A DNA stretch of 64,000 nucleotides. It comes from Bigelowiella natans CCMP2755 (Eukaryota > Protista > Cercozoa). Below, piece after piece: positions 20,501 through 46,540 of the stretch; position 1 is the stretch's first letter, and each line of letters opens with the position of its first letter. Both the position numbers and the translations under genes were made by a program. Below the pieces are notes generated by a model, which did no database searches, was not told where the DNA came from, and saw only the letters and a program-made list of their open reading frames with translations. Location: the NCBI GenBank assembly GCA_000320545.1, contig ADNK01001985.1, positions 29,166 through 93,165 on the forward strand, written 5' to 3'.

Positions 20501-21633
20501 AGAGGGTGTGAGGGAAGGGGGGGGCGAGGCTGCTACCACCACCCCTTCTTGTAGTTTGCACAATTTGTTGGAAAACCACAATCACCATAATGCACTCTAT
20601 CTAGGTAATGCGACATGAGAATAATCCTCAAAAAAGGCCCGATAACATCTAATTCATGTCCCGAAAAATCTTCTGAATCTGAAAACTTGGCTAACTTGTC
20701 GCAGAACGTAAAATGGGATACAATTCGCTTCGCCCCGTGCTCGTATTCCGGCTTCCTGCCCCGAGCACGTAAAGTAGGATGCATTACGTTCTCTCTTTTA
20801 AGTGCGATTTTCTGTTGTCGTAAGTCTAAAATATGTTGTATATTCATGTATTAAGCAACAGCCAAAAATCCACAAGAGGGGTTCCTTGACCATGAAGTTA
20901 CCGAAATCTGCATTCCAATATCAATTCAACCTTAAAAGTCGATTGAGATTCTGCAAGATGTCGCTCTATTTTCCATAATATTTGCTTTATTGCATGTCGT
21001 ATTGTGACACGGGCGGGATATTTCTTTTTCAAATAGATACTGGTGCCCATACCTAAACTGAGGGACTATATATGGAAATTATCGGTAGAACATCGTAATA
21101 AATCGTTACAGTATGTAAAGATTAGTGTATCCGCTTTTTCCAAATGATAAGAGAAGAGTATGTTGGAAATATAACTGAAAACATCTTAAAAATTTCGCAA
21201 CTTGCTTCACTATAATTCAAGAGGTAGTTCGGGTATTTGGGTCGGTCGGCGCCCCCCTTGTGTTTCATCCGCTTCGCGCAATCAAGGTTGGGATTAAGAG
21301 AGGATTTGGATACGAAACTATGTTCGTAATAGAATTTAAACCTGGGAGGGTGGTCACTGCTAGCTGGATGAAAATGAGGGAGGCTTGTCAGCGAAAACTT
21401 CGCGCCTGATGGGGAGAACCTACCCCCCCTACCGATTTTTTTCGAGCGTAGCAGATGAAACTTAGCGCCTGTTTCGTTTCATTCCTTCTACAAAGTGCGT
21501 GTTTGGTTATTATTTTCGAGATTTTAGTTGCTCATCGATGGTGATCTTCACCGACGTCGGGAAAACACACGCGACCGACTGTTTCCTTTGTGCACACAAT
21601 GAACAAAGAAAACGTGGAATTTCAGAGACCAAT

Positions 21634-22248
21634 ATGGATCATTTTGAAGAGAAAACGAAGAGATATTCAATGTCATCCAAATCATCTCATTTGTCATCTT
21701 GCTGCTGTTTATCAACAAATATACAGATAGGCCCCTTAGAAGCCCGTCGCCACCACCTAGCATGCTGCGGCCCTCGCCACAATCGCGATCGGCGTTAACA
21801 TCAGCGAGACGTAGGATTCATGGCTGGCGACAAAGAAATATGACCCCCCCCCTCATCATTTTCAGCCTCCTGTCGATACTGGCCTATTCAATTGCTTGGC
21901 ACTCTCCTGTGCGGATCTCTGCTGCCGCTGCTGTATCAAGGGGGAAGTTGTTTTCTATGGGAATACTTTCTAGTAATCCCAGAGCAGCAAGGATGACGTC
22001 TATGGCTAGACCTCCAGTAACACAATCGCCTTTATTTATAACGGGTGTGGATGGAAGAATATCGCCCATGCACATTCGTGCTACTACTACTACTGCTGTG
22101 TCCTCATCAACATCTGGAGCTGACGAGGAGACAATAACGACAACAGCATCACCTCCAGTAGAAACGACTACTGCGCCGTCAAAAAAACAGAATGATGAGG
22201 TAGTAGCTGATTGCCATTAGTAGTAGTCGTAGCAGTAGTAGTAGTAGT

Positions 22249-22282
<34 letters not shown>

Positions 22283-22339
22283 TGATGTTGAATATACATG
22301 TCTATGTGTTGAGGTTTTGGAAGGTCATCATGCAAATGA

Positions 22340-22384
<45 letters not shown>

Positions 22385-24429
22385 CTGGACATTATCAGCT
22401 TGAGAAAATATCGGAGGCCTTGTCTAAGGTGAAGACCACACCTGCGGCAATTGCGAGCTTGATACGGTAAGATCACATCACTCACCCTCATTGTATATGT
22501 GTGCGAAGTAGTATATGTCGGTGAGTAGTAGCACAAGTAGTAATAACAGAAGTGAAGTACTAGTGTAGCTCTAGCAACATGAAAAATCTATGGCGATGAA
22601 GTACACGCTGCATTTATCTCTACCTACAGGCGACACGAAGATGTAATGAGCCTTCTCACATCTTTGGACGAAGAGATAGAGATGGCTATCAACGCTCCCT
22701 CGAACGAAAATGACGGAAAACTGGAAGAAATACTCCGAATGAGGGTACAAACAACCACTAGAGAAGAACACAAATATGAGAAACCGAGCTAGATCATCAG
22801 TTTCGCAGCTTTGCTTTCGTCAACTGGAGGAGATTGATGACAGGCTACAGTTGTGTCATTTTGTCCGGTCTATCTCGAATTCTGAATCAATCAATGATGC
22901 CTCACATTTCATTTATTCATCTATGATCCTCCTCCCGCTCAAACCAGGCCACACTTCGCGAGGAGCTACTTCCCGTCGCCAAAACTATTGAAGAGTGGAA
23001 GAAGTTTGCCGCAGCTGCAATTGCCGAACAGACTGGTATTACTGGCATATAACGAGATCTGATATGGCGAGACCTGCGTCTTGTACTGATGATATATCTC
23101 CGAGGAGATGCAGCGACAGAAAGCGGGAGGGGGCTCACAAACTATGAAACCATATATGTTATAATATATTATACTAAAATATATCCTCTACATATGGTGT
23201 TCGTCCGTTGTAATATTCATCGTTTCCTTCTGAAATCTGTGTTTTTTCCTGGTGCGGCATGTGTGTATTTGAATCTATATTTCAGGGGTGGTTGTGGCAA
23301 CCCCATCAACAGAGTAAGAAAAACTAACGTCTGGAAGGGGGGGGGGGGGGTAAGGGTAGAGAAATATGTTCCATTCATGATGAGGTGCGTTGTTGATGTC
23401 AATGGTGTTGTTTTTCTATGAATATTTAGAGGACACTGGTATCCGGCCTACTTCTCATCGAATCTCCCGCAAGTCAGTAGTAGTACATATATACAAATAC
23501 AGAATGATACCTGTCATAGTAACGGTATTCGTGTGGGCGCTTGCATATTTATATCACTCCACACACGTATTATACCGTAAGCGTCGTAAGTTTGACATTT
23601 CTTATACAACGGTGCTGCTCGTCTATATACCGGCCGTTGGTTGCTGATTATTCTCAGGGCGAATTGGCAAGCATTGAGCTGTTCGGTAGGCCATGGGTTC
23701 TTTTCAGGGACGAGACGTAAGAAATGCAGGCTGTTTGCATGCCGTGCAGATAACGCTCTTTCTTTGCTTCACAATAAACACGATGGAATTCTCCTGACTC
23801 TTCATCTCCTATCAAATCGAAGATAGTACGACGAATGATGATAGCAATGTTGCTGCTGGCATTGGGGGTGTAGACAGAATATTACCAAAAGGGATTGATC
23901 TTTATGCGTGCAATGACAGGGGCGATGTGGGATGTATTCATGACCAATGTGCACATCGAGCCTGCCCGTTGTCCCTTGGTAGTTTTACCACTAATTTATC
24001 ATCACATCATCAGCAACAATGCAATTAGAGAGAGAAAAGAATTTGGGGGGGGGGGGGAGAAAAGAGTTTGAGGAAGAAGAGAAGGCTAAGGGGGGGCTTA
24101 TTGAAAAGTTCGAAATGCGTGCGTGCAAGCAGCTATGCTGCATATGCTTGTTCATTAGTAGACATACCGATATGGGGTATCCATCATCAGAGTTGCCAAT
24201 GCTCATGACGAACAGCATGCACGTATATGTGAAAATCATGATGTAAATATATATGGTGGGTGTGTATTATATGATATACTGATCTGATCGAGTAGGAAAG
24301 GTCGTCGGAGGTACAGTGGAGTGTCCGTATCATGGGTGGAAGTTTGACCAGAAAGGCGATTGTAAGGTGGTGCTTAACAGCAGCAGACGTGGCTAGTAGA
24401 AAGAAGCAAGTTCAACATTAAAATATGTA

Positions 24430-24479
<50 letters not shown>

Positions 24480-25396
24480 GTGTGTGTGTGTGTGTGTGTG
24501 TAAGACGGTGAAGCAACTAAACTTTGCTTTGTTCCCTCCATCTCATCCTCCTACGATCAAAGGCGATGCCTTCAACGCGTATGTGCAAAGGCATTTCAGT
24601 TGATTCCCTACCGGTAACTGCCTACCTCCCCCCCTTTGCGTCATCTACTTACTTCTTGTTCTTGTTCTTCTTCTTGATACCATGGTACCAGTGCGCGGAC
24701 TTCCATGCATATATCTGGCGCAGCTTAGCAAATTTTTATAACCATTTATGATATTCTAGCCATAAGAGTGCATTCCCCTGCCCTGATGGCGATTTTTGTT
24801 GTATTGACCTCAATGCCGCCATCATCATCATCATCATCATCATCATTACCATCATCATCATTGCCATCCTAATGATTAACATCCCTGTTGCAGATCGAGG
24901 AAAAGGATGGGCTCATATGGCTTTGGAACGATGGGGGTGCACAATCGCAAGAAGACGACGACCTCTTTAGCAAGCCTACTGCTGCGTCGATACCCAACTT
25001 GAACTTTCTTGTGGTAATAGGAGAAGCGTAATAGTCATAAAGAAAGATGAGATCATAGTACTGCTACCAGTCTTTGTGTGGAGGAGGAGCAGTAGTGTAG
25101 AACTAGTAGTATCAGCAGTGTAGACCATACATAAATTGGTGGTGTGTCTAACCTTTGCGACATAGGATGGTGAGGAGGAAGGCTTCACAGCTGAGCTTTC
25201 ACGGGAGGTCGAAAGGAATCAATGAATAAAAGAAGACGAAGAAGAAGAAGAAGAAGATGATGATGATGATGACGACGATGATAATGATGATGAGGTGGAG
25301 AAGGTTTTATGATTATTGCCTCTAAATCTATCTTCAAGCAAATTTGTTGCCTCAAGAAGAGAAAGGGGGGGGGCGGGGGGAGGGGAGCGAGAGGGA

Positions 25397-25439
<43 letters not shown>

Positions 25440-25704
25440 GAGAGGGAATCCTCCATCTCCACGACTATGGTCATCGGGACAAGAAGTTAATGTCCATAGT
25501 TTTATTTCTTCTTACACTGTTGGTCTACTATTATTTACCAGATCGCAGTAGACTATACCGTGTTGGTGGAGTCGCTACAGCACATAGCCTATGAACCCAT
25601 TCGAAAACTACCGGAGATCACGCAAAGTATGTCCTGTGAGTTGGCCTTTAAGGACAATACTTTGTGTGGTTGCGAAATCGATGATGATGATGATGATAAT
25701 GGCA

Positions 25705-25739
<35 letters not shown>

Positions 25740-25872
25740 AGCCAAGGAAAGTGTTGAGACAAGAAAATTGAAATGGGGAAGTCTTAACTTCATTTCGAAT
25801 TTGTGACGTAAAGCTTTGGTAATTTTCACCATCCTCGTTTGAAGATGTGACGAAGTATCTGTATACCCTTCC

Positions 25873-25904
<32 letters not shown>

Positions 25905-26180
25905 TAGATCTCCCATGGCCTGAGCAGCTAACTTTCCATGCCTCCCGACTTCTGGCCGGCGACCTCATCCCGTCCCATTCTCCTTCTGAAAAGCAAGAAG
26001 AAGCTTCTGCTGAGGGAGGACATCACAGAAGAATGGGAACTCTCCAGGCTGCTCCAGGGGTGTATATATCAAGTCTTGAACTGAAAGAGGGAGGCGGGGA
26101 GAAAACCGACAAACCGAGTTTTACAGGCGGGAAAGTGCATCAAATGCACTCAATTGTGCCCATCAGGCCTGGTCATATAC

Positions 26181-26237
<57 letters not shown>

Positions 26238-26482
26238 GAGAGAGAGGGAGAGGGGAATTTATCATCTCTGTCTCAATTGCATGCTTATACTCCTCTCATG
26301 CTTGATTTTCTTCCTTATTCGAAGGCTACTCTAGGCTATTATACCGCATGTCAGTCGGGAGCAGCGTCTCCGGAAGCCTCTCCAAAATCCTGCCAGCTTC
26401 CATGAATCTCTGGCAAAACATTGCGACAAATTGCTTTGATCATGGCATTCGACTTGTGGAGGAGGCTACAGAAATTTACTAG
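21634..26482 (+). CDS. CAO: Chlorophyllide a oxygenase (CAO)-like protein: Rieske cluster intact, mononuclear Fe site absent
   Basis: GHWYPAYFS, IELFGRPWVLFRDE, DQCAHRACPLSLG, ECPYHGW, MPSTRMC, EKDGLIWLW, FHASRLLAG and HQMHSIVP..GYSRLLYRMS are collinear with CAO. The Fe motif reads ESLQHIAYEPIRK. Bipartite leader (PLIIFSLLSILAYSIAW plus an S/R-rich region). Start is approximate. Confidence 0.85.
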
Positions 26483-26689
26483 CTTTTAAGCACTCCCAAA
26501 TGAGAAATTTGATAGCTGAAATAAAAACTTGACCCCACAATTATAAATACGGGAAGGCATTATATAATAATCCGGATCGACCTAGGCCTTCGAAATTAAT
26601 GCACTCACAAAATAATCGTTGTCTTAGCTCCACAAAATACTGTTCAGTCCCTTAGTCTGACAGTAGCCATAACAACTCAGGCGTAATGG

Positions 26690-27110
26690 TCATTAACACA
26701 TGATGTGCATGCCATGTGTACTCATTTAACAAATGTGGTCGAACCACTGGGCCTGCTAATTGAACACATGTGGTGTCTGAAATACACCATCGTGAATGAA
26801 TTTACCATTGCAAGACTGCTAGGCTGTGGTGATCGACACTTCTAATGATAGACTCTAGACTTCGCAACATGACCTAGCTAGCTCTAGGGTGTGTAGCTAG
26901 CTAGCTAGCTAGATGCTAGGATGGCATGCTGATTTACTCGAATTTTGGTGTCCGCTAATCTCACGTGCGTTGTCATTGCAGCTTCATTCGATTGCGTGTC
27001 AATAGAAATCGGCCCACGCACACACATGCTAGCATGCCAGCACGCACGCACAGCGTCATGTAGCGCGTACCACTACGCGGGCACAAGTCACGTGCGACAA
27101 CAAAGGGGTT
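26690..27110. repeat. CTAG/GCATGC-rich degenerate tract
   Basis: Tandem CTAG runs at about 26874-26920 and repeated GCATGC. Confidence 0.5.
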
Positions 27111-30840: not shown

Positions 30841-33800
30841 TCACTTTTCTCTGCCCATAATTTCTAGATTCTGTACATATGACACTGCTTTGACCCATAA
30901 CTCCATCTTTGATTTTTCACTCGTCTCTAAATCAAGCGTTCTCTCGTTGGTTTTGAAAGAAAAATAGTAGGATGAATTTGGATTTTGGAAGATATTGCGT
31001 TGGAACACTGATGTGGTTCTTCCGATGCAAATTTCCTTGATGTCGTTCAGCGATATGTAAGATGCTGCTCTCTTCAACATTGCTCGACGATGTCTTAAAG
31101 AAAGCCAGTAAATACGCCCGTTTTCAACAACGACAAATTTTCTATGTGGTGTTCCTGATCGACCATGTTTCAAGAAAATATCTCCTGTTGTCACTGCAAG
31201 TCTATACATTCGTCCCTGCTTCTCATCATAATCAAGGGGACACGTAGCTGCTGTAGATGTTAGTAATGATGATACTCCTTCACATCTCTTTGTTTGGGAC
31301 GAGAACGAAATATTCCTTATCAGAGTTCTAGTACTATCGGAACTACTATGTGACTCAGATTGATAGTTTTTTGTTTCACCAGCATCTTCTTCGTTATTTG
31401 AGTTGCCCTAAATTAATATTTATATGTAATGATTCTAAAATGCTACACGTTTAGTTTATTGATAACCTGATTTAGCTGGTTAAGATCAATTAGTTCTTCA
31501 AGCCTTCGATTCGCTTCTATCATATCTCGTGCTTGCTTCTCGATTAAGTTTGATACATCCATTGAAGCGGTCAGTGCATAAATACAGCTTTGTCGGGCAC
31601 CTTAATTCAAGTAAACGAAAAGAATCATTTTTACTCGATATACAATATGACAAATGTAAACAGCTTGGCGTGATTCTGGCTACCATAAGTCCCATAAGTC
31701 TTTTTTAGCCCTCCTTTGTCGAAACGGTGTGATAGTTTCTGCCCTTTCCTAGTGACAGAGACCTGAGAGGTAGATTTTTGCTGCGATTTCGAAGCCCAAG
31801 TTGGCAACGGTGGCGGTTTAGGTCGCTGGATAATTGTTGCAGCAGATATAGAAGAGGATATTGAAGATAAATCCGACGATGACCGAGATCCTGAGATTGT
31901 TATGGTTGTTAAAATACAGTAATAAGCGGGGAGTATTCTCAAAGCAAACCATTTGTCCGAGATTCAGAATGACTTTTAGAAGATCTTCTTCTCCTCTTCA
32001 ATGCATTTCCTATTCCGGCGAGAATTTTATTGGCCGCCTTTAAAACAGTGCTTTTCCCCTGGGATTTCTTACTAGGTGTACTATAAGTGAAGTGCTTATT
32101 TTCCATACGAACACCCGAAGATGCAGATGCAGTCGTGGCGACACTTAGATACATAGGATCATTTAATTGAGAAGCCCCACTTCCTCTGACCCCTTCGAGA
32201 GAAGACGGAGGTTCCGAATCGACCCATTGAATTGGTTTTATTGTAAGGAACACTTTCTTCTTTTGAGTCGCTTGAGCAAAGGGTGTTTTAGAAGAGCGTC
32301 CTCTGAGAGGATTTTTTTCTTCAGTTGATGGAGAAGCAGACCTTGAAAATCGAGGGGTTTTCTGTCGGTTTGTAGAAACTGGGAATGTTGATCGCCTGTG
32401 CGATCTAAGGGATCCAGGTTGCTTATTTGAATCGCCCCTACTCCGTGATTTTTTGGCATCGGAAATTGAATCCAACTGCTGTAACGACCCTGAAGAAAGC
32501 GTTCGAGGAGGTAGCTTTGGACGTCTTGCTTCGTTTGCCATTGCTGAATGTGAGCGATGAGGCAGTCGTGGTGATGTTCCTTTCAAAGATGATGCACGTT
32601 TAAGTGTCATTGATCTCTTTCTTAATCCTTTTGATACACGCGAGCGCGAATCTCTTTTCAAAGAGTATGATCTGTAACCAGTTGGTCTGGGGGGTGGAGT
32701 CGGAGGACTTTTACCCGCCAGAGAGGGTATCAGATCATCCAACCATGAAGCTCGATTTTTGTTCTCCGAAATTCTTTTGTTGACTAGTGATAATCTATTC
32801 AGGAATGCGCCTTCATCGATTTGTCCAGATACGATGAAGGAACTGGTCCGAGTTGAGGTTTGAGGGGTGGAGTCAGACATCTCTTCCAACAACTTTTAGG
32901 GATGTAGTATATTACATCATTCTTAGATTACAAAGCATCAAAGCATAGCATGTAGCATGTAGAACAAGTTTACATTACTCACCTTAGATTGATCTTGTGA
33001 CGCTGAATAATCTTTTGGAAATAGATGAAGAATAATATCTTCTACTCTCTTTGCGCACTTAAAGTGTGCCATAGTTCCTTACAACGGAATATTTTTGCAC
33101 CCTGTTCTTTATGATAAGTACACGATGAGAACGTGGCACAGTAGCAACAACCCGCCTCTCACATTTCACACATAAGCTACCCCTCTTATCCGAAAATGGA
33201 CATTACATGCCAAAAATCATATTGGTTCACGGTCCTTTAATCTCTATAAGCTATGTTCCACAGCTGCGTTATCTTCAATGTTCAATGTCCAATGCTTCCA
33301 ACCTGTTGATAATAATGGGAGGAACCTTCCACGTGTCATTTGAACAGGATTGCGTAGAAGTACCCTGCGTGTGTTGTTGATTTATCTAATGTCGTACCTG
33401 ATAATCGGCTTTGTTTCTCTGGAGGAGAGTAAGCGGTAAAACGCTTGGAATGTCTTTTTAAGTTGAGGGCAGAGGGAACAATTCACCAACAACAAACTCG
33501 GCACACCGAAGCGCATGGGGTTATAGTTCCTACGACAGCAGCGAGCCTACCCTATTCACTCTGCTCACAGTAGCTCTCATGTCATTGTTCACCACATTTT
33601 GCCGCTGTTTGCTGAAAAATTTGTGCTGTGCTTTGGCTGTTGGGGAACGCCATCAGATTCTTCTGAAAAAGGCCATCATTCAGTCATCTTGCGATAAAAT
33701 GCCTTCATTCTTCCAAACATGCACTTCAAAGCATGTTTCAATTCTACACAGATGTTGACATTTTGAGCATGCAATACATCAGGAAAATAATCTTCTAGAT

Positions 33801-35501: not shown

Positions 35502-37492
35502 TGTGATTAGAGCTAGCTCTGGCTGTAGCTCAGCACCTACTCTACGACGAGAAAACACAGGATGCGCTCACATCTCTGGTGTCCGAAGTCCTGCAGAACA
35601 AAAAAACACGGTATGTCCTCGTAGAGACAATCAAAGACTTAAACTTGCTTGAAAGTACATAGTTAAGTGATCAACGCCACTCATACATATCTGTCACCGC
35701 TTAGTGCTCCCTCCCCCTTCCCCTCCTACTCCTTGAAATGCTGATGTGATGCGTTGCTAAAATTGCGAATTTCCTACTGTTGGACTGTTGTCCCTGTGTC
35801 GCGCATAGGGACGAACTTGTTGTGCTTTTCTCGGACTTATTCCAGGTCTGCGTGATAGAGAGAGAGGGGGGGGGGGGGGGGGGGGGGGTTACCGGATGCA
35901 TGTGTGCGTAGTACTGCCGTTGGCTGTGGTATCATCCAGAGTATGAAAACATTAAGTGTGCGTCTTATCGTCGTTGTTTGGCATTATTCTATCGTGATGA
36001 AAGGATTATGTCTCATTTGCTGTACTTGATGCAGGACCCTATAATTCTGGAAGAGGTCACGAAACTATCGTCTGAAGTTACAAACAGGGTATGTATGCAT
36101 GTACGCATCACAACAGCTCAACAACAACGACAACGACAACAACAGCAGCAGCAGCGATTGTTATGGTTATTATAACGACGATGAGGATGGCAATGATGAT
36201 TGTCACTGTGTTTTCCCGCAATGAATCAGGTTTTGAACGACGGTGAAGTCAATACACATGCGCTGAAGATCACCGCAGAGCTATTCAATAAGGTTCGTTA
36301 GCACCATCACCGTTCATTCCCCCTCCCTCATAGTTATGATACGTTCTTCGCCGAACCATTTGTCTCTGCTGCTGCTAGAAATTATCGTTTCCTACTAAAG
36401 CAGCTGCTGCTTTTCCATTCCGAACAAAAATAGTATAGTGTTTCTGCACAGATTATTATTTGATTGCCACGATGGTGTTATCATCATCATCATCATATAC
36501 TGGCAGGTCTTAGCTGAGAAGCACTTGCAGAGCCAAGCTGGCGTGGCACTCTGGGTAGTAGTAGTAGTTGTTGTTGTTGTAGCAGTAGTCATAATAACAC
36601 GCTTACCACTGCTAGCGTAGTAGTAGAGTAGAAGAACTTTGCCATAATGTACATGAAATTGTGTGTGTGTGTGTGTGTGCGTGTGTTTGTGATTCCTTCA
36701 TTGCCATCCTCATCCTCATCATCCTCCTCCTCATCCTCATCATCCTCCTCCTCATCATCATCATCATCACGCATCCATCATCTACCCTCTCTCTCTGGCA
36801 GAACTCCATAAAGTACGCGATTGTTCCCAATTGGTTTGGTGAATACGCTGGCCAGCCACCACCACCAACACAGCAGCAGCAGCAGCAGCAGCAGCCTTCC
36901 ACAAAATCACCCGACGAGAGCAAATCAATGGGCGTGGCATCGACTAAGAACGAGCAAGGAGTAGCCGCGGAGACGGTTGTTACCGGTGAGAAGAAGAAGG
37001 AAGGACTTCCAACATTTGATGAGAACGTTGCGGTTGCAGCCAGTGCTCGAAAGAGTCGTGATGTTAATGATGATAAGGAGGAGGAGAAGGGGGATACAGC
37101 TGCTATCAACACTGATAGTAGAAATGCGTCAAAACTTGGGGAGATTAAAAATATTGACGCGTATGACGATGACGATTCTTTGTTGCTACCAGACGCCGCA
37201 GTAGCAAACGCATTCGACCGACCGTGGGAAAATGATTTCGTGGTTGATGATTATGAGCCACCACAAATTGATATTCATAAGGATACGGAAATGGCGGAGA
37301 AAGGTAGCAGTATTAGCGGTGGTAATAGCAGGCACGAGCAGGTTCCCAATCATCATCCCACTGATATCGATGGTAGTAGTAGTAGTAGTAGTAGTAGTGC
37401 GAACGCTGCGAAGAAGAAGGAGACATTGCAACGTGCAGAAGACCTCCGACTAAATCGAAAAATGCCAGAAGGAGATCGAGGAGGAGATATTG

Positions 37493-37526
<34 letters not shown>

Positions 37527-37773
37527 GTTATCATCATCCAGTGATGAGAAGCGCGGGAGCAAAGGTAAGGATGGTAATGACAGCAAGAATGGCGGCGATA
37601 AAGCCTCTGGAGGGAAGGGGTTGGATGCTGAGAGAAACACGGACATAGAAGGGAGCGACAACGACGACGGCAACGGATTAAGTGGTGGAGATGTACGAGG
37701 AGGCAATTTAAGGCCAGATGAAAGTGGTAGAGAAGGAGGGCTAAACCTTGAAAACATAGCATATTTCAAGTAA
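34187..37773 (+). CDS. Uncharacterised single-pass membrane protein, probably mitochondrial, with an acidic low-complexity tail
   Basis: R/K/S-rich presequence MNPSFLRRFKK...RQRTPFSTK. TM segment FVFLVSCAAALVTVVVM. Helical region EDLRKQFTGEVAEVASSAL...AGVALWNSIKYAIVP. The 5' exons I checked splice in phase. Confidence 0.65.
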
Positions 37774-45367: not shown

Positions 45368-46540
45368 GGTGTGGCAAAAGGCTGGATAGGGTAGTAGCAA
45401 TGGCGAAAAGGACGAGCAAAACGCGCGCCGAGGAGCTTATAACCGACATCAAGTTCTTTAAAGTTAGATCGTCGTCAGTAGTGCCACCTTCTCCAGCTAC
45501 ATCTCCAGACGGAAAAAGCAGCAGCAGCAGCCTCCTCGTGAATCTCCTAGCCGTATCGACATCTTTGGGCAATCTCCACGTATTCCATCTCCTCTTCTGT
45601 GATGATGCGAAAAACACAGAAGATGCACAACAACAAGAAGGGGGAGGAGGAGGAGGAGGCGACAACCCACCAGTCTCAGGGAATTGGAAAGTGCTGCGGT
45701 TATGTAGCTATCAACACTCGCGCACAGCTCCTATCACCGGGATGGCGTTCAAAGCTACTGTTTGTATTGGCAGTGGAGCTCGGAATGAAGACAGAAAGGC
45801 GACGACGGGGGGGGGGGGGGATGGTAGTAGCGATGATAGTGGCAGCGATGATGATCAGGCGATTCTGCTCGCAGCGGCTTGTGGACCTGACATCCTTGTG
45901 CTACGATTGCAACTACTGCAGTCATCACCACCATCATCAACGTTATCGATGAGCATGACGACAGAATGCTACCACCGTGCTCACGAGGAGCGAATAACAG
46001 GTGTTAATTGGCTGCTGGGAGGAGGCATTTCCAGCAGCAGCACAACTACCACCTCATATAACGACAACAGTCGTTTGCACTGTCCTTCGCATCTGCTGCT
46101 GCTAACTTGTGGAAATGATGGAAGAATTTTAAAGTGGTGTTATCGACGTCGTACTAGTGACAACATGGATGGGAGCTGCCAACAGGGCACATCGTCGTCA
46201 TCGTCTTCATCATCATTATCATCATCATCCATTGCTCGTGGTGGCGGCAGAAGAGATGGGGATGAAGGCAATCACGTCTTCGAAATCACCCCCTTCAATA
46301 CAAGTAACAGCCCTGCTCCAAGCAGGAGTGACATATCATCATCACCACCACCACCATCGTCGTCGTCGTCGTCATCGTGCTCCCATAAGGCTGATCAGAT
46401 TGCTAAGATGTACCTCGATCAATACGTCGACTCCAGAGGCTTCAACGCAGTGAATATCACCAATGCGAGGAGGATGGAAGGAAGGATGGCTCCGTTGCTG
46501 GTACCGTACAGGTATGAGTAATAGTAGTTATAGAATAGTT

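Follow-up and report, generated by a model that had tools for sequence, protein, structure and literature searches.

Chlorophyllide a oxygenase (CAO) is essential to the synthesis of chlorophyll b. It is a Rieske oxygenase, and in these enzymes each cluster delivers its electron, via a bridging aspartate, to the iron of the next protomer, a scheme recently restated for CAO (10.1101/2025.02.10.637544). In Micromonas pusilla the two tasks are divided between a Rieske-only polypeptide, MpCAO2, and an iron-only polypeptide, MpCAO1; both halves are needed, a result for which Kunugi et al. (2013, J Biol Chem 288:19330) are cited, and the pair is active in vitro, a trimer-like assembly having been proposed for it (Liu et al. 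2022). We consider here a gene of the alga Bigelowiella natans CCMP2755, located in a stretch of 64,000 nucleotides of contig ADNK01001985.1 (assembly GCA_000320545.1, positions 29,166 to 93,165, forward strand), which we call the window. This window gene is very probably that of the Rieske-only subunit of a two-gene CAO, the partner of which is P0268, the product of a gene on another contig, C3481.

That B. natans has a two-gene CAO is already known from the 2025 preprint cited above, which reports a heterodimeric CAO in Mamiellophyceae, Chloropicon, Caulerpa and B. natans, the pair of the latter being jgi Bigna1 89482 (Rieske) and 85514 (Fe-binding), on different scaffolds. The window gene is almost certainly the first of these. 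The preprint gives identifiers and e-values only for the pair, and leaves heterodimeric CAOs out of its tree; what we add is the gene model, the residue changes, the truncation, the leaders, the transcript support and an approximately unbiased (AU) test on the iron-only halves. While the Micromonas enzyme is likewise made of a Rieske-only and an iron-only polypeptide, B. natans differs from it in being the host of a secondary plastid, with bipartite leaders on its proteins, and in having a partner where the Rieske loops were deleted rather than substituted.

An intact Rieske centre, a decayed iron site and a complementary partner

The window protein has a collinear core in common with the canonical CAOs of Arabidopsis, Chlamydomonas and Prochlorothrix (PMC9615114), including the motifs CAHRACPLSLG, CPYHGW and RLLYRMS, and it differs from them in the absence of the iron ligands, of the bridging aspartate and of the C-terminal region. 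It was handled exon by exon in every search (exons are numbered as in Table 1). Nine exons match three CAO-family proteins in collinear order by tblastn, and a profile derived from 33 canonical CAOs (538 positions) is matched in strict exon order between its positions 192 and 466. The four Rieske ligands, CxH-x16-CxxH across the junction of exons 8 and 9, are all kept, with the spacing of canonical CAO; CAHRAC (from 23948) and CPYHGW (from 24322) lie just where a preliminary description of this DNA, made from its letters alone, had placed them. No Pfam match, PaO included, was found for exons 11, 14 and 15. PAO, TIC55 and PTC52 belong to the same superfamily, in which a PaO-type catalytic domain comes after the Rieske domain, but the order of the window exons and their motifs follow the CAO profile, and a separate PAO-type gene is present on contig C1791; a PAO or TIC55 identity was rejected on the strength of order and motifs, short exons taken singly discriminating little when set against the paralogues within this genome.

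The second half of the protein tells a different story. In exon 13, ESLQHIAYEP is aligned to EnLLDLaHaP of the profile, so that the motif NxxDxxHxxxxH reads S..H..Y....K: ESLQHIAYEPIRK stands where CAO has ENLLDLAHAPFTH, and the bridging aspartate is gone together with both histidine ligands. The four replacements (N>S, D>H, H>Y and H>K) had been proposed beforehand, and they are borne out by the collinear alignment; taken alone, the profile match of exon 13 amounts to -0.6 bits, its placement resting on collinearity. In exon 15, CFDHGIRLV is aligned to vLgEDlvLv, ED having become HG with loss of the carboxylate, and the stop codon comes six residues beyond this motif, again in keeping with what had been noticed, about 55-70 C-terminal positions of the CAO profile being absent. 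All five positions of the iron site and bridge are thus replaced, and the protein lacks the 2-His-1-carboxylate triad. The decayed half nevertheless comprises about 180 codons, all in frame, and retains core strands of the catalytic fold, RLLYRMS and HQMH..P.RPG.

Transcript contigs from three studies (X1, X4 and X9), mapped onto positions 21500-26700, show that the gene is transcribed and completely spliced. Its 14 coding introns (11 joints listed as such and three obtained from adjacent record positions) are all GT..AG after the stated shifts of the cut. Read one by one in phase, the exons yield an open frame of 1,611 nucleotides, or 536 residues, from the ATG at 21840; with a start at the upstream in-frame ATG, 21762, the protein would have 562 residues, and the exon of the 5' untranslated region (UTR) has no in-frame ATG. 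The 3' UTR extends past 26700. The earlier view that the CAO motifs and the spliced core frame are preserved can therefore be upheld, the 15 coding exons being open, bounded by GT..AG and collinear with CAO. The limits formerly given to the gene, 21634-26482, need amendment at one side: the end coincides with the stop codon, while 21634 falls inside the intron that separates the 5' UTR exon from exon 1.

Table 1. Features of the window gene (positions in the window) and the stretches of the 538-position CAO profile matched by its exons
Feature	Positions	Strand	CAO-profile positions	Content
5' UTR exon (3' end; start not mapped)	21257..21286	+		donor GT at 21287; transcript contigs X1, X4, X9
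Exon 1	21727-22199	+		first in-frame ATGs of the mRNA at 21762 and 21840
Exon 1, leader				hydrophobic signal peptide (MTPPLIIFSLLSILAYSIAW..), then Ser/Arg/Ala/Thr-rich transit-peptide-like stretch
Exons 2-5	22399-22466, 22630-22744, 22948-23035, 23286-23313	+		charged linker ahead of the catalytic core, helical-looking by eye
Exons 6-7	23430-23472, 23658-23716	+	192-203 (exon 6); 206-223 (exon 7)	first Rieske-domain strands (HWYPAYF; ELFGRPWVLFRDE)
Exon 8	23920-23978	+	225-243	CAHRACPLSL, with the first Cys/His pair of Rieske ligands intact; 31.3 bits against the CAO profile
Exon 9	24296-24366	+	245-267	CPYHGW, with the second Cys/His pair of Rieske ligands intact; Pfam Rieske 28.5 bits
Exons 10-12	24563-24613, 24894-25013, 25166-25207	+	269-284 (exon 10); 285-313 (exon 11)	end of Rieske domain (MPST.., EKDGLIWLW) and linker to catalytic-domain remnant
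Exon 13	25542-25626	+	326-343	decayed mononuclear-iron motif, ..VESLQHIAYEPIRK..; seen in X4 and X9 transcripts
Exon 14	25908-26171	+	356-372 and 384-421	catalytic-core remnant (LTFHASRLLAG.., ..VHQMHSIVPIRP) with inserted charged stretch
Exon 15	26325-26482	+	426-466	core strand SRLLYRMS.., decayed carboxylate motif CFDHGIRLV, end ..NCFDHGIRLVEEATEIY, stop at 26482
Intronic microsatellites	22218-22379, 24430-24477, 24819-24883, 25256-25436, 25680-25739, 25874-25904, 26175-26234			

The iron-only paralogue that the preliminary description had thought worth seeking does exist. On the minus strand of contig C3481 lies a second CAO homologue, encoding ..EHGLLMENLLDLAHAPFTH.. and ..LSEDTSLVLGQQ.., which keeps NLLDLAHAPFTH and EDTSLV (EDxxLV), hence an intact iron site and bridging aspartate. 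Its upstream part is reduced to HWYPVEF.. and, after it, a short stretch devoid of the Cys/His loops, the Rieske loops having been deleted; in the scan of the whole assembly it displays Pfam PaO and VanA_C matches and no Rieske match. P0268 corresponds to the spliced product of this gene, with 100% identity over the first exon and 93-99% over the remaining tblastn segments, which extend beyond the exon boundaries. It was found on cDNA contigs of three Joint Genome Institute (JGI) samples, so that the gene is expressed, and its cDNA has its own start methionine, behind which come a hydrophobic signal and a region rich in Ser and Arg, and its own stop. A leader made of a signal and a transit peptide is thus common to the window protein and to P0268. 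Such a bipartite leader is what is expected of proteins destined to a secondary plastid. The closest relatives of P0268 are from the chlorarachniophytes Amorphochlora amoebiformis and Lotharella globosa.

The assembly (91.4 Mb in 3,736 contigs) was searched for the Pfam families Rieske, PaO and VanA_C. Six loci have Rieske domains, and the five others besides the window gene are of the b6f, bc1, ring-hydroxylase, PAO and ferredoxin-like types. When the exons of the partner and two canonical CAOs were used as queries, three places only were recovered, namely C3481, the PAO-type gene on C1791 and the Rieske exons of the window gene. The latter is the only CAO-type Rieske protein of the assembly, and C3481 holds its only CAO iron site: the CAO iron site and the CAO-type Rieske cluster of this alga lie in two different genes.

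A probable two-gene oxygenase weighed against other readings

We can understand this pair as one enzyme in two pieces. The window protein, encoded in the nucleus, would be imported into the secondary plastid by means of its signal plus transit leader, where it would provide a working [2Fe-2S] Rieske domain borne by a C-terminally shortened catalytic remnant, itself presumably unable to bind iron. P0268 has the opposite anatomy, with the bridging aspartate, the 2-His-1-carboxylate site and a full catalytic domain following a Rieske domain from which the cluster loops have been cut. Since the cluster of a Rieske oxygenase hands its electron to the iron in the adjacent protomer, a mixed oligomer would rebuild one path: placed next to P0268 in a hetero-oligomer, the window protein could complete a single electron path leading to chlorophyll(ide) b. 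We infer that the two products associate physically, that electrons flow in this direction and that neither gene is dispensable. The reading in terms of two subunits, already put forward in the preliminary description, has gained from the discovery of a complementary partner, from the transcription of both genes and from the searches for a canonical CAO. Neither a canonical one-gene CAO nor a third CAO came out of the Pfam, partner-exon and canonical-CAO searches of the assembly. Some points weigh against the two-subunit reading. The assembly is in 3,736 contigs, with the consequence that a gene might lie in a gap; furthermore, when CAO Rieske regions were used as queries, the Rieske exons of the window gene scored below every canonical CAO compared, so that some functional drift is possible.

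The decay of one half of the protein may naturally evoke a duplicate on its way out, an expressed pseudogene in the making, with chlorophyll b made by the C3481 product alone, which would receive its electrons from another Rieske protein or from a ferredoxin. In favour of it are the decay and shortening of the catalytic half, a Rieske domain more divergent than that of any other CAO compared, and a minor contig that keeps the intron 23717-23919. We nonetheless consider this account very improbable: all 15 coding exons are in frame, even along the decayed half, the four cluster ligands and their spacing have been kept, and fully spliced transcripts of the gene occur in three studies. Moreover, it would leave a partner without a Rieske cluster in a genome without any other CAO-type Rieske domain, while Micromonas, according to Kunugi et al. 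(2013) as cited, requires both of its halves.

It is somewhat easier, yet still unlikely, to imagine that a Rieske protein derived from CAO has been recruited to another job, as the donor to a different oxygenase or as a regulatory or scaffold subunit, instead of being the obligate donor to the C3481 product. A fast-evolving sequence, the additional charged stretch in exon 14 and the loss of the C-terminus would go well with such a change of role, but the losses in the window gene and in C3481 are complementary and the former has the sole CAO-type Rieske domain of the genome, which argues against a different job, and the retained core strands RLLYRMS and HQMH..P.RPG fit a structural role in a CAO oligomer. 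As for an artefact of the gene model or of the assembly, whether an alternative exon with the histidine motif or a single gene broken in two, nothing in its favour came to light and we give it hardly any credence. Exons 12-13-14-15 are continuous in contigs of the three studies, and the alternative exon that the preliminary description had allowed for was not found at these joints in those transcript contigs; no NLLDLAHAPFTH-like frame was found on the contig of the window gene; finally, cDNA contigs give the partner a start, a leader and a stop of its own, and the window gene has its own stop and 3' UTR. A two-gene CAO remains the reading that we prefer, and this split enzyme would then offer natural evidence that, at each interface, a single cluster and a single iron site suffice for a Rieske oxygenase, with a bearing on the assembly of Rieske oxygenases and on the division of function between duplicated genes.

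Origin of the split and relatives of the two halves

Iron-only CAO homologues are widespread in the set of proteins that was fetched, with representatives in Caulerpa, Acetabularia, Neomeris, Auxenochlorella and Symbiochloris and among marine metagenome forms, while Bryopsis and Ostreobium have canonical CAO genes. A tree of the catalytic domain (59 rows, 219 columns) was built with IQ-TREE under a site-mixture model, some of the iron-only rows deriving from gene models that may just be short of exons. P0268 makes a clade with the Amorphochlora amoebiformis and Lotharella globosa proteins and three further relatives (support 100/100), without a resolved position in this tree; a grouping of this clade with Dasycladales, obtained with FastTree, was lost in IQ-TREE. 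The well-supported branches require the iron-only state to have changed three times or more, and in no bootstrap tree do the iron-only rows make one clade. The AU test rejected a single clade of all 23 iron-only rows (log-likelihood difference 112.7, p 1.1e-5), and did not reject the union of the chlorarachniophyte clade with two marine Mamiellales-like iron-only forms (p 0.19). The comparison of these sequences indicates that iron-only CAO halves arose more than once in green algae.

How the chlorarachniophyte pair fits in this picture is evenly balanced in our view. Transfer from a prasinophyte or a convergent split, the two origins named in the preliminary description, may each account for it. 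There may have been several independent splits of CAO in green algae, and the pair could be one of these, or could have come from an ulvophyte endosymbiont, in neither case being shared with Mamiellales; the Rieske half of B. natans would be the one that went furthest, a fast-evolving, dedicated electron-transfer subunit that shed its C-terminal segment. Other Rieske-only halves were sought in three ways. With P0056 as the query for Rieske-only orthologues, canonical CAOs only were retrieved; a profile made from P0065 together with the frames of exons 1 and 14 returned six proteins, none of them the window protein; and two metagenome scans, one with exon 14 and one with exon 15 aligned to the partner exon, confirmed no Rieske-only relative. 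The metagenomic P0056 was the one candidate Rieske-only homologue recovered. Because the Rieske exons of the window gene have low scores, a query with the Rieske region would not have brought the window protein to the surface.

Some of the proteins met along the way deserve a mention. The iron-only homologues of Dasycladales (Acetabularia, Neomeris) and Symbiochloris are among P0008, P0005/P0310, P0002 and P0266/P0275, a group that also covers Ostreobium. Ostreobium quekettii has two canonical CAO models, against none in the 2025 preprint. P0056, a protein of 597 residues from an ENA metagenome with no close named relative, has an intact Rieske motif and keeps the asparagine, the aspartate and the first histidine of the iron motif, having lost the second histidine (..APFSN) and the carboxylate aspartate (EG); this could be the Rieske-only half of a GC-rich alga, at a less advanced stage of decay. 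Conversely, P0281 and P0282, sister to Caulerpa g8266, each lack one of the four Rieske ligands (CVCH, CHCG) and have an intact iron site; they may illustrate an early stage of Rieske loss, or else an error of sequence or model.

Minor features of the transcripts and of the window

Between 30 and 40% of the sequence words of the window are present in public sequencing runs of one organism, which is the expectation for mRNA. Three further long open frames, at 31942-32892 (minus strand), 36661-37770 (plus) and 45400-46518 (plus), encode 317-373 residues with abundant low-complexity runs; no Pfam family exceeds the curated cut-off in any of them, and the last has two weak sub-threshold matches. 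Within the window gene, microsatellites are found in six of the 14 coding introns and in no exon, with the units TAG, GT, TC, CAT, GAT, GA and AT/TG. The intron 23717-23919, between exons 7 and 8, is retained by a minor contig of 262 bases (23688-23949) in all three contig runs, and it is also where the transcript assemblies are interrupted. A low-depth contig of X1 skips 23141-23511 with CT..AC ends, which amounts to a GT..AG intron on the minus strand, and a weak, spliced antisense transcript may thus span introns 4-6. Finally, X9 differs from the window by G>A at 26392, the third position of a codon in exon 15, and by A>T at 26567 in the 3' UTR, two differences that probably reflect strain variation.

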